Sequence record: MW349128.1 | DNA length: 64,000 nucleotides | Strand: one strand, 5' to 3' | Part shown: positions 19,001-22,000 of the stretch, piece by piece | Position numbering within the stretch: position 1 is the stretch's first letter | Layout: each line of letters starts with the position of its first letter | The notes under the pieces: model-generated | Database searches by the model: none | What the model was told of the DNA's origin: nothing | The model's input: only the letters and a program-made list of their open reading frames with translations | Made by a program: the position numbers and the translations under genes

Positions 19001-22000
19001 GAAAGCACTAGAGATGTTAAAATTGATTGGATTAAATTGAAAAAAGAATCTCATTCAACTAGATTATGGGAATCATTCTCTCAAGGTCCAGAATTCAAAA
19101 ATAAAGCACTTAACTTTGAGGTATTTGTCAATAACAAGAAAATTCCTAATAACTATGTAACTGTATTAAATTCTAAAGCTATTAAGATAAGTGAGATATC
19201 TGGATATGCATTAAATAATGTAATGATTAGATTTAACTTCTCTTATGACGAAGCATTACAGAGAATCATTGATAATTATAAATATAAAAATATTGATGTT
19301 AATGAAGATAGATATCATGATGATAGTATTGCTGATGTTAAATCACCGTTTGATGTTTTAACTAGTAATAAACAAGCTAAAACTTTAGGAAGTTTATTAG
19401 TTATTCAATTAGTTAATAGTGGTAAAAATATTCTTGATTGTAATGTAGATAATTTACCTATCGACATAAATCTAAATACAGATATAATTGAAAATAGTTA
19501 TATAAGAAAGAATATTAATTTAGATTGTTCAAAACAGTCTCCTCATAATGAAAGTTATGTTGAAAAAAATATTAATTGCTGGAAAGATTTATTAATCTAA
19601 TCAGCATCAAGTCTATAAGACTTGTTCAACGACTAAATATATTTTACCTTTTTATTGTAAAGGTAATGATATAGTCTGTGCTTCAAATTAATAATTTGAA
19701 GATTGTATAAAATATTAGATAAGAATTTCATATCTAAAAAATTTCCTAACATATTTTTATAATATGATTAGGAGGTGAAATTAAATGATAAATAAAAACG
19801 GAAAATTAATTAAATCTTTCAAAACTAGAATATACCCAAATCAATTCCAAAAAGATTATTTCAACAAATGCTTTGGTGTAAGAAGAAAAGTATGGAATAT
19901 GGCTTTAGAAGATTATCAGAATAGAGATGATGATGTTAAATTCAGTGGTTTTGATTTTCAAAAGAAATTAAATAATGAAATATATAATTCTGGAGAACAT
20001 TCTTATCTTTATGAAGTTAATAGTATGGTTAGACAAGAAGCTTTAAAAGATTTAGATAAAACATTTCAAAAATATAGAGATGAACAGAAAAAAGCTAGAA
20101 AATCTAAATATGTTATTGACACTGAAAGGTTCAAGCCTAAATTCAAAAAGAAAAAACATTCTAATGAATCATTTAGGTTTATGGTTAAAAATAAAAAATA
20201 TCTACCTATTAAATTTATTTCAAAGAAATATATAAAAATAACTTCTATGGCTGGTATTAAACCTTTTATAATTAAATCTAAAGAATCAATGAAGTTTGTT
20301 AATTCTAATAACCATAGATTTCTTTCTTACACTATAAGTAGAAAGAATGAAAAATTTTACATCTCTGTTAATTATGAGATAAACAATTATAAGAAACAGA
20401 GAGAAAATAGTGATTCAATTGGTATTGATATGGGTATGAAAACTCCATTATCATGTGTTGATTCAAATGGACAAACATTTGAATTTAAAATTCCTCATAC
20501 ATTATGGAAACAAGAAAGAAAAACTGAAAAACTGCATAGAAAATTAGATAGTAAGAAATATTATTCAAAATCATATTATAAAACTTTAAAACAATTAAGA
20601 AAATCATATAATAGAGAACAGAATATATTAGAAGATTATAGAGATAAAATTACTAATTGGTTAGTTAAGAATTATAAAGTAATTAACATAGAACCCTATA
20701 CGCATAAATCAGGAGATAATTTAAGAAACGCTCGTAGATCTAATAGAAGATTCGGTAAATATGATTTTTTAGAGAAACTAAAATATAAAGTTTTACAATA
20801 CGATAATGAATTAAATATAATTACTAAGAAAAAGACTACTCAAACATGTTCTTCATGTGGATATGTTAGAACTAATAAAGAGAAATTAGTTCTAGGAGAA
20901 GATACTCATGATTGTCCTAATTGTGATGTAGTTCTTGATAGAGACTTGAATGCAGCTAAAAATATTCTAGATTTAAAGTACGTTTAATTTCACAAAATAA
21001 AAAGATATGAGAGTCGCCTGCGGTCAGCGGGAGACGATAAACGGGTGATAAGCTAATGTCTGATTAGCTTTACAAGGAGTGAGAAGGATCCTTCTCACGT
21101 TAGTCACTGAACCAAGTGTATTTTATACAAGGTCTTGCCTTTATATTTAATATATAAAATCAAGACTTAACAAGACAGATGAATAGAACTAATCTGATTA
21201 AGACTATTAATAAAATTAGTGATTATGTAAATGAAATTCTTGATGTTAATAAGAATAATGAAAACTTATTATTGAATAGTAATAATCCTAGTTTTTATGT
21301 AATGAATAATAGAAATTTATTAAAATCTATAGATGATTTTAAAACTAATGAATTTACTGCTGAAATTTGGGCTTATAGAGCCTTTAGTGATAAAAATTTA
21401 GAAAATGTTTTTAAAGATGGGAAATCGTATACAATATTTTTTGATTTAACATCAATAAATAAAAATACTGGAGGAGAAGTCAAATACCCTCAATATGGTA
21501 TATCTCTATACGATTTTGATAAAAGAGAAACTGTAGGAATTTCAATAATAAATGATATAGATTTTCCTGAAAATGAAGAAAAAAGTATATCTTTATATGT
21601 AAATAGAGAAAATTATCCTGATAATTTAGGAATACTATTTTATACTGGAGTAAACACTACTGACGGAAATGATAGAATACCTCAAGTATCTAGATTTAGA
21701 AATATGAGAATATTTGAAGTTTATGATGAAGGATCATATACACCGGCTCCAGAAGATAAAGTAAATTCTAAATATCCATATTCTGAAATGGATGAATATA
21801 ATAAAGATTTCTATAATAAAGAAAACATTAAAGATGTTCATATTAAAGAAAATGATATTTACTTAGATTTCAAAGTGGATGAAACTTTATTAGAAAGAAA
21901 TGAAAGATATACATTCTCATTTTATGCTAGAAATAAATCTAAAGAAGATGTTTATTTCATTAATGAAGATTTAGATATGAAGTTCTTAATTAAAAAAGAT

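Follow-up and report, generated by a model that had tools for sequence, protein, structure and literature searches.

Introduction

To our knowledge, no elements other than IStrons unite a ribozyme and a transposon with an RNA-guided nuclease. They have so far been studied in clostridial chromosomes and prophages. In group A IStrons (CdISt1/CdiIStron; Clostridioides difficile, Enterococcus and Fusobacterium), a 5' group I intron is followed by tnpB, and the right end of the element is also the 3' splice site. Here we describe an element with the same layout, 1,653 nucleotides (nt) long, at positions 19526-21178 (plus strand) of a 64,000-nt stretch of DNA (the window; positions are those of the window unless another record is named). 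The element splits a gene of the Staphylococcus phage Machias and encodes an apparently intact TnpB, and judging by its features it is almost certainly an IStron. The Machias record MW349128.1 matches window bases 19000-21700 at 100%, and window base 1 is record base 186001. A virulent jumbo phage of 274 kb, Machias belongs to the AR9/PBS1-like group, and its describers presume that uracil replaces thymine in its DNA; their paper lists introns and homing endonucleases, and TnpB, transposases and IStrons are unmentioned (10.1101/2020.12.14.422802). In our literature search, no paper came up that describes IStrons, or a TnpB carried by an intron, in jumbo phages of Staphylococcus.

The likeness to group A IStrons extends beyond the layout. 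The 5' exon ends in U after ...GAT, the element ends in ...CAG, and the ribozyme is similar to the Twort type (IA2). Moreover, there are multiple copies, each in sense orientation, and the protein-coding genes that hold them are unrelated. Compared with the group A signature (flanks TTGAT, ATTAT or TTTAT; terminus TCAG), the copies described here have flanks TAGAT or CGGAT and termini ACAG or CCAG, such that only ...GAT and ...CAG are common to both. Unlike group A IStrons, no copy in Machias or the related phage LY01, and no relative that we inspected, has a tnpA or a remnant of one; the element is carried by virulent jumbo phages and not by the chromosomes of bacteria; xGAT or CGGAT forms the 5' motif; the P1-P2 part of the ribozyme differs among copies, each version being matched to its exon; the copies are of long standing and tied to their sites; and the ribozyme is part of a large resident family of phage introns that have no open reading frame (ORF). 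IStrons with ORF-B only are already listed in the survey that defined these elements (PMC4227781, Table 1), and intron homing as the route by which IStrons lacking TnpA spread has been stated in a 2026 review (PMC13565253).

[quoted passage not shown] Competition between splicing and guide production, and the action of TnpB as a homing nuclease, have been shown for group B, whereas the Machias element is known from its sequence alone. Group B IStrons differ in inserting after GG (transposon-adjacent motif (TAM) TGGG), ending in CGG, having a G at the 5' splice site and encoding a serine-recombinase TnpA. They also reside in plasmid-like prophages, not virulent phages.

The element interrupts a single gene

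Three ORFs follow one another in this part of the window, at 16085-19600, 19785-20987 and 21179-22702, all on the plus strand. The first and third are the two halves of one gene. Exon 1 spans 16085-19525 (1,147 codons) and is collinear with coding sequence (CDS) S6_1390 of phage S6; exon 2 spans 21179-22702 (507 codons plus the stop). The first ORF overruns exon 1, and its stop codon, 19598-19600, sits inside the intron. In S6 the gene is a single CDS of 1,651 amino acids (aa), and the DNA is unbroken across ...AATTTAGAT/ATGAATAGAAC (the slash marks the insertion point). Joining the Machias exons at 19525/21179 gives a stop-free product of 1,654 aa that is 91.4% identical to the S6 protein from end to end. 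A reading of the window made before any database search (the sequence-only reading) had proposed that the 1171-aa and 507-aa ORFs are one gene split by a 1653-nt element; the uninterrupted S6 CDS and the stop-free joined exons bear this out.

The insertion is exact by comparison with S6, LY01, PALS_2 and DC4, and the same site is empty in these and other relatives. The junction is in phase 0, directly 3' of an Asp codon, GAT. Because the first base of the element (T) differs from the first base of exon 2 (A), and the last base of the element (G) differs from the last base of exon 1 (T), the ends are unambiguous. The exons match no Pfam or PHROG family (a match to CBM_4_9 is below threshold), and a virion role for the gene is putative, being drawn only from its neighbours. 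In GenBank, the host gene (16085-22702) stands in two pieces, CPT_Machias_207 and 209, each entered as a hypothetical protein, and the ORF between them is named a "transposase"; the depositors did join the exons around a sister copy in CPT_Machias_090.

The 5' part is a compact group I ribozyme

Elements P, Q, R and S of a group I core (AAUUGCUGGAAAG, AAUCAGCAUC, GUUCAACGACUAAAUA and GAUAUAGUCUG) can be recognised by eye, in order, within 19574-19678. A chain of such motifs occurs 61 times in Machias and LY01, and not once in five shuffles of both genomes. We aligned 60 of these 61 cores and scored a hand-drawn P3-P4-P5-P6-P7-P8 structure on the alignment, including the P3/P7 pseudoknot. The helices had played no part in the motif filter by which the core sequences were gathered. 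Across the 60 sister introns, P3-P8 were paired in 91.1% of cells (P3 97.8%, P4 99.7%, P6 94.4%, P7 100%, P8 84.3%), as against 29-46% when the partners were slid by 1-3 columns. In 321 cells the pairing is kept through double-sided changes, a level of covariation that none of 500 shuffles reached. A covariance model built from this alignment (R1) scored the element at 109 bits (E 1e-21), similar to the scores of the sister introns, and together with the covariation it places the catalytic core P3-P4-P5-P6-P7-P3'-P8-P7' at 19567-19676 (plus strand).

The remaining helices, likewise on the plus strand, were read from the sequence. In P1 (19522-19540), AGAU/UGUU (19522-19529; the slash marks the splice site) pairs with AACAGUCU (19533-19540), giving a U.G wobble at the 5' splice site and an internal guide sequence GUCU. 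The wobble, together with a terminal G at the 3' splice site, is found in all five full copies of the element and in a deletion derivative, which are described below. P2 is a hairpin at 19544-19559 (CAUAA/UUAUG), and P9 a hairpin at 19681-19701 (CUUCAAAUU/AAUUUGAAG); ORF-less sister introns have a hairpin at the same place as P9. The whole ribozyme, P1-P9, hence spans 19522-19701. By eye, we saw no convincing P10 pairing of exon 2 with the internal guide.

When applied to 69 kb of unrelated phage DNA, R1 detected only the three Twort orf142 introns (E 5e-6, 7e-5 and 0.02), the same three that Rfam model RF00028 scores at 63-101 bits. This cross-match suggests that the ribozyme belongs to subgroup IA2. 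The Twort introns, which we take to be the source of the solved Twort ribozyme structure, come from a phage of the same host genus and have similar core elements and helices; they differ from the Machias element in having no ORF, larger peripheral helices and a higher G+C content, and in being recognised by Rfam. Rfam gave no group I match in the window, in the element at E values up to 10, or in 150 kb of LY01. RF00028 misses the family as too compact and too A+T-rich. A published Rfam scan of the relative DC4 was likewise empty (PMC10638138), and blastn detected no member of the Machias intron family in DC4. We conclude from the covariation and the cross-matches that the first 180 nt of the element are a bona fide compact, Twort-like group I ribozyme.

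TnpB is predicted to be active

The tnpB gene (19785-20987, plus strand) encodes 400 aa and is preceded by an annotated ribosome-binding site, AGGAGGUG (19770-19777, plus strand), that is kept in the other copies. The protein has the Pfam domains HTH_OrfB_IS605, OrfB_IS605 and Cas12f1-like_TNB, falls in PHROG 506 ("transposase") and has a CxxC...CxxC zinc ribbon. It can be aligned end to end with TnpB of ISDra2 (solved structures 8EXA and 8H1J; phmmer E 9e-21), such that the RuvC residues D215, E303 and D387 fall on ISDra2 D191, E278 and D361; the zinc ribbon is shared, and the predicted TAM (xGAT) is related in form to that of ISDra2 (TTGAT). The two differ in that sequence identity is low, and in that ISDra2 is an autonomous insertion sequence with a TnpA and no intron. 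All five full copies have the D-E-D triad. In an alignment of 17 members of the clade, D215 and D387 are invariant, and E303 is present in at least 90%. The ratio of nonsynonymous to synonymous divergence (dN/dS) of tnpB is 0.10-0.28 over all five copies. Judging by these substitution rates, purifying selection acts on tnpB in each of the five copies, and from the conserved residues we conclude that the enzyme is catalytically intact.

The right end resembles an omegaRNA

The predicted omegaRNA scaffold lies at 20934-21178 (plus strand) and overlaps the last ~54 nt of tnpB, its 5' limit being set by the consensus fold. Its predicted parts, on the same strand, are helix A (21013-21035), a hairpin (21050-21071), helix B (21079-21098) and a terminal stem-loop (21132-21166). 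The scaffold ends in UUAACAAGACAG, and its last base, the terminal G at 21178 (omega G; plus strand), is the 3' splice site. These 245 nt (about 20934-21178) fold more stably than shuffled sequences (z = -3.8). Among the five copies, the 3' module is 90-94% identical, compared with 83% for the ORF. The last 100 nt of the ORF are unusually conserved (91%). One would predict such a pattern for a gene whose 3' end doubles as part of an RNA scaffold. In the five copies, six of the eight positions in the hairpin at 21079-21098 are kept paired through double-sided changes. When 11 elements are compared, 10 of the 16 predicted pairs in the 3' module show a compensatory change, and all 11 terminate in ...AAGACRG or a close variant. 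We also considered a duplicated CAAGAC near the 3' end as a helix that might switch between splicing and guide production, and dropped it because it is not kept in the copy designated M3.

Five old copies occupy five different sites

We identified five full copies of the element, of which Machias holds three and LY01 two. Each has a site of its own, in frame and following an Asp codon GAT. The second Machias copy (41900-43552, plus strand; tnpB at 42150-43355) is 84% identical to the first and lies in gyrB after codon 24; the third splits the "virion protein" CPT_Machias_090. The five copies are 84-87% identical from base 38 onwards, and 61% identical over bases 1-37, which form P1-P2. None of the five sites is common to Machias and LY01, and each is uninterrupted in the other phage. 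Four of the sites were checked more widely, and each was occupied in 1 of 10 related genomes. Other phage records contained no TnpB with more than 60% identity.

Synonymous divergence (dS) between tnpB copies is 0.50-0.76, even within one genome, and that between backbone orthologues of Machias, LY01 and S6 is 0.33-0.46. Since the paralogues are at least as diverged as the backbone, the copies represent old, site-specific lineages and not a recent burst, and by this measure they are older than the divergence of the phages. Old copies, each filling its site in only one of the sampled phages, give the patchiness that one would expect where homing elements pass between genomes at a fixed site and are later lost.

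LY01 also has a derivative of 296 nt that lacks TnpB, at a sixth site (LY01 59891-60186, minus strand; 10891-11186 of the LY01 piece L011). It retains the ribozyme and the final ~100 nt of the right end, tnpB having been lost in a deletion bounded by two AGGAG(G)UG repeats. The insertion follows GGGU, and the guide is GCCC. Thus, the distal right end appears to be enough for the intron, and the choice of site appears to follow the ribozyme guide.

Splicing appears to be under selection

Guide and exon in P1 are GUCU and AGAU in the 19526-21178 copy, GUCC and GGAU in the other four, and GCCC and GGGU in the deletion derivative. In every copy, the guide base opposite exon position -4 pairs with that position. 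All five insertions are on the sense strand, in phase 0 and after GAT. The gyrB site reads AGT GAT in LY01, S6 and MarsHill, versus TCG GAT in Machias, where it is occupied. This Ser change crosses from one serine codon family to the other, and no serine codon except TCG ends in G. Two further sites have synonymous changes, of Pro CCT to CCG and of Ala GCT or GCA to GCG, in the occupied genome only. Since the empty alleles of outgroups lack the G at these three sites, the G at exon position -4 is derived. Alteration of either exon or guide such that position -4 pairs is hard to explain unless P1 is used, and we consider it highly probable that the element splices.

The element fits the definition of an IStron but has no transposase

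Besides tnpB, the interior of the element contains no further ORF of at least 60 aa. We searched Machias and LY01 for a Y1 TnpA with phmmer and six-frame tblastn, using as query the verified Y1 transposase of a Helicobacter phage, which matches 104 phage records from bacteria and archaea. The search detected none (best E about 1); it was not aimed at a serine-recombinase TnpA, and host genomes were outside it. The features of IStrons that we find are a 5' ribozyme, a 3' tnpB module, ends that coincide with splice sites (at the sequence level, at five sites), and multiple sense-strand copies in unrelated genes; the tnpA of IStrons, intact or as a remnant, is missing from the Machias element. 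The sequence-only reading had described a group I intron with a TnpB and an omegaRNA-like right end and without TnpA, and this anatomy agrees with the published definition (PMC4227781; 10.1101/2023.11.20.567912) as far as a sequence can reveal, the exact group A end motifs excepted. Its individual parts also hold: the full group I core (P1-P9 at 19522-19701, with covariation in 60 sister introns and the Twort cross-match), the intact TnpB with all three RuvC acidic residues (Pfam domains and alignment of D215, E303 and D387 with the ISDra2 triad), and the structured right end finishing at the omega G (stable at z = -3.8, conserved and covarying, with G at 21178). The search for tnpA in the rest of the genome that the same reading had proposed, extended to LY01, detected no Y1 transposase.

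Natural empty alleles match the predicted guides

The guide of a TnpB is the sequence that flanks the right end, and we therefore place the predicted guide segment at 21179-21194 (plus strand), the first 16 nt of exon 2, which is also the predicted target in empty alleles. The 5' flank is TTAGAT (19520-19525, plus strand), whose last four bases, AGAU, are the exon strand of P1 and which is the predicted TAM of the empty allele. The predicted cleavage substrate is hence xGAT followed by ATGAATAGAACTAATC. The guide of the 19526-21178 element matches the empty allele of S6 at 15 of 16 positions and that of LY01 at 14 of 16 (positions 1-14 perfectly), in both cases beside TAGAT. For two other copies the match is perfect: the guide of the gyrB copy matches LY01 at 16/16 positions, beside GTGAT, and that of the LY01 copy designated "Y1" matches MarsHill at 16/16, beside CAGAT.

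Relatives are found in phage-like contigs

A protein search returned about 29 metagenomic TnpBs with 34-48% identity. We inspected six of these relatives (TnpB 36-46% identical), and all six have the same three-part layout and lie on phage-like contigs, with neighbours that include a tail tube, a fibre repeat and a dCMP deaminase. Group I R and S elements are found 120-260 nt upstream of tnpB, a shared helix directly follows the stop codon, and 158-201 nt downstream the elements end in UAAYAAGACRG or a close variant (UAACAAAACAG in contig L113). In the stretches read around the six (up to 5-6 kb on each side), tblastn gave no TnpA match. Among 185,579 cellular species representatives, the best relative in the matches listed is 31% identical. 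Scans of metagenome and genome contigs with the clade alignment gave, among the matches listed, generic TnpBs of at most 32% identity, and a scan of IMG/VR with TnpB gave one distant locus only.

The intron model has no match at the TnpB loci of Clostridioides phage HGP05 (TnpB about 28% identical to that of Machias), Clostridium phage c-st (the one tnpB locus), a Helicobacter phage and Campylobacter phage CPt10, and we rejected all four as close analogues for this reason. Machias and LY01 themselves encode more distant TnpBs (25-29% identity), at 272224-273429 of the Machias record and at 53860-55032, 62380-63483, 183049-184158 and 230326-231435 of LY01. None of these has a core of this intron family directly upstream; those of LY01 are preceded by a non-coding stretch of ~570-600 nt. 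What sets the lineage of the 19526-21178 element apart is that it is seen only in phages and phage-like contigs with no detected tnpA, that its left end is tailored to each site, and that the genomes carrying it are presumed to be uracil-DNA.

TnpB may drive RNA-guided homing

Taken as a whole, the explanation that we favour, and consider reasonably probable, is that we are dealing with an IStron of the IS200/IS605 type from which tnpA was lost, or in which it was never present, and which is now a mobile intron of virulent jumbo phages. That TnpB drives its homing from phage to phage seems to us somewhat better than an even prospect. We offer more tentatively, as something slightly short of evenly balanced, the wider proposal that phage-restricted, transposase-free IStrons persist as RNA-guided homing introns on uracil-DNA, with TnpB replacing HNH, GIY-YIG or LAGLIDADG enzymes. 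Homing would fit the purifying selection on tnpB, the greater conservation of the RNA module than of the ORF, and the occupancy of each site in one genome. It would also fit paralogues older than the divergence of the phages, and the existence of natural empty alleles in which xGAT is followed by a near-perfect or perfect match to the guide.

We envisage that the host pre-mRNA would be transcribed through the element, and that the guide GUCU would pair with AGAU of exon 1; splicing at U19525 and G21178 would then restore the 1,654-codon ORF. TnpB would be translated from its own ribosome-binding site, bind part of the unspliced transcripts and trim them to an omegaRNA comprising the scaffold (about 20934-21178) and, as guide, the first ~16 nt of exon 2. 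Splicing and guide-RNA production would hence compete for the same transcript. On co-infection by an element-free relative, the complex would recognise xGAT and the exon-2 sequence, which are joined only in the empty allele; the occupied allele would be protected because the target there is preceded by ...GACAG and not by xGAT. The cut would be repaired by phage recombination from the occupied allele, copying the element in, and a UvsX-like recombinase is annotated in Machias. The conflict between splicing and guide production, which experiments on other IStrons have demonstrated, and homing by TnpB both have precedents (10.1101/2023.11.20.567912; PMC10055086).

In this respect the element is comparable to the endonuclease-bearing introns of other phages (T4 td/I-TevI; the HNH introns of SPO1 and SP82), which also contain an ORF for an endonuclease predicted to cut the intron-less allele and are also sporadic among relatives. 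Unlike in those introns, the target would be found by an exon-derived RNA guide and not by protein-DNA recognition. Since the guide would be taken from the flanking exon, a single enzyme could act at any site. Introns with homing endonucleases of the classical HNH and other types are present in Machias as well.

Several points weigh against homing as the full explanation. Splicing, omegaRNA formation and DNA cutting are all inferred from sequence. Some targets have mismatches close to the TAM, at position 1 (LY01, M3 site), position 3 (Machias, "Y1" site) or position 6 (S6, gyrB site). The 5' motif varies: empty alleles have TAGAT, GTGAT, CTGAT, CAGAT and CGGAT, that is, xGAT, and the flank of the 19526-21178 copy is TAGAT as against CGGAT at the other four. 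The motif could mirror the ribozyme guide as much as a TAM. It should not be read simply as a TAM, because the base at -4 tracks the internal guide sequence, and it may reflect the guide, because the TnpB-less derivative follows GGGT and one ORF-less sister intron also follows GAT. We rejected CGGAT as the TAM, since comparison with outgroups marks the G at -4 of occupied alleles as derived, and this base tracks the ribozyme guide. The derivative, in addition, keeps the distal "omegaRNA" in the absence of TnpB, so that this part may serve the 3' splice site instead or as well. Lastly, homing moves an element to its own site only, and cannot explain at least six sites in two phages and others in metagenomes. 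Candidate routes to new sites, any of which may have operated, are a TnpA acting in trans, reverse splicing aided by a reverse transcriptase, and ectopic repair.

Two of these routes can be extended into explanations of mobility as such. The element might be moved by ordinary IS200/IS605 transposition, with a TnpA supplied in trans by a Staphylococcus host, a prophage or a plasmid and inserting 3' of a target that ends in GAT. Several unrelated sites have been reached, which needs some transposition-like step; the five copies follow ...GAT and end in CAG, as group A IStrons do (TTGAT, TCAG; PMC4227781; 10.1101/2023.11.20.567912); a stem-loop lies about 12 nt from the right boundary, as in IS200/IS605 ends; and in most known IStron copies an intact tnpA is absent, their mobilisation presumably being in trans (PMC13565253). 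However, no Y1 TnpA was detected in Machias, in LY01 or in the stretches read around the six relatives, a search that left host genomes aside; the left end, which TnpA would need to recognise, is the least conserved part (61% over bases 1-37); the copies are old (dS 0.5-0.76), with no near-identical pair to mark a recent transposition; and no relative above 31% identity appears among the matches listed for the 185,579 cellular species representatives. We therefore regard transposition in trans as unlikely. We give still less weight to the possibility that the intron itself is the mobile agent, reverse splicing into transcripts that match its guide, followed by reverse transcription and recombination, with TnpB a passenger that adds homing or exclusion. 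The match of guide to exon at every site, including that of the TnpB-less derivative with its different flank (GGGU/GCCC), would be a natural consequence of such a route, sister introns without an ORF abound (about 27 in Machias, 34 in LY01), and the window contains an RVT_1 reverse transcriptase at 33310-34863. Yet the pairing base in the exon is derived, and found in the occupied allele only, at three sites, which suggests that pairing improved after insertion, and the phage reverse transcriptase is retron-like, with a proposed role of its own. We know of no demonstration that reverse splicing and fixation of the cDNA are efficient for group I introns.

Two further explanations were weighed. 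TnpB, having ceased to cut DNA for mobility, might regulate splicing or act as an RNA chaperone, serve as an RNA-guided repressor, or be a weapon against intron-less genomes with no gene conversion. Binding of TnpB lowers splicing in other IStrons (10.1101/2023.11.20.567912), domestication of TnpB to RNA-guided regulators is documented (PMC10705468), and killing of competitors by phage homing endonucleases has been described (PMC13565253). Domesticated TnpB regulators, however, have lost RuvC residues, whereas here D-E-D is kept in the five copies and the aligned clade; moreover, the guide matches the empty allele only, so any activity on DNA would look like homing or exclusion. A role of this kind appears quite improbable. 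Finally, the element could be a dead insertion that breaks the gene, the two ORFs being expressed separately without splicing, and it is true that GenBank has two separate hypothetical proteins and that exon 2 begins with ATG. Against this, the ribozyme core is complete and scores like those of the sister introns, P1 pairing has been maintained by compensatory change, the gyrB copy leaves an exon 1 of 24 codons that could not function alone, and every insertion is in phase 0 on the sense strand. We find a dead insertion scarcely credible.

If homing by TnpB is correct, one nuclease would home at any site from which the ribozyme can splice, the guide being copied from the downstream exon, and intron homing programmed by RNA would thereby be seen between viruses in nature for the first time. 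The lineage amounts to a natural experiment in which the transposase has been removed, set in virulent phages and in genes that are essential or are large members of a putative structural module, with dozens of ORF-less sister introns and classical endonuclease-bearing introns alongside. Should TnpB indeed drive the spread, crosses between phages would show in a straightforward way both RNA-guided homing and how splicing is traded off against guide production, and a TnpB that works on uracil-DNA would be of practical interest for the editing of jumbo phages.

Resident sister introns and other features of the window

By motif chain, there are about 27 ORF-less sister introns in Machias and 34 in LY01. 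The Machias matches fall in genes known to be split by introns, encoding RNA polymerase subunits, DNA polymerase, terminase, prohead protease, NrdE and GyrB. By blastn, the family is found at 29 places in Machias, 34 in LY01, 29 in AH12, 21 in PB50, 12 in Madawaska and 10 in MarsHill, and is undetectable in the close relatives S6, PALS_2, DC4 and SA1. RF00028 detects none of the ~60 family introns (window and LY01 pieces L011, L013 and L014), and automated annotation misses them; for annotation more generally, the consequence is that Rfam passes over a whole intron family, while GenBank splits the host gene and labels TnpB a transposase.

Two loci illustrate the resident family within the window. 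An ORF-less intron of 177 nt with the same core lies at 44996-45172, in the Toprim region of gyrB, after ...GAT and with the guide GUCG; gyrB of S6 is uninterrupted. Three ORF-less group I introns stand in tandem at 57460-58040 (model matches at 57468-57562, 57651-57772 and 57918-58025), following an ORF at 55773-57458. The reverse transcriptase gene at 33310-34863 (RVT_1, E 7e-21) is the retron-like reverse transcriptase reported for MarsHill-like phages.

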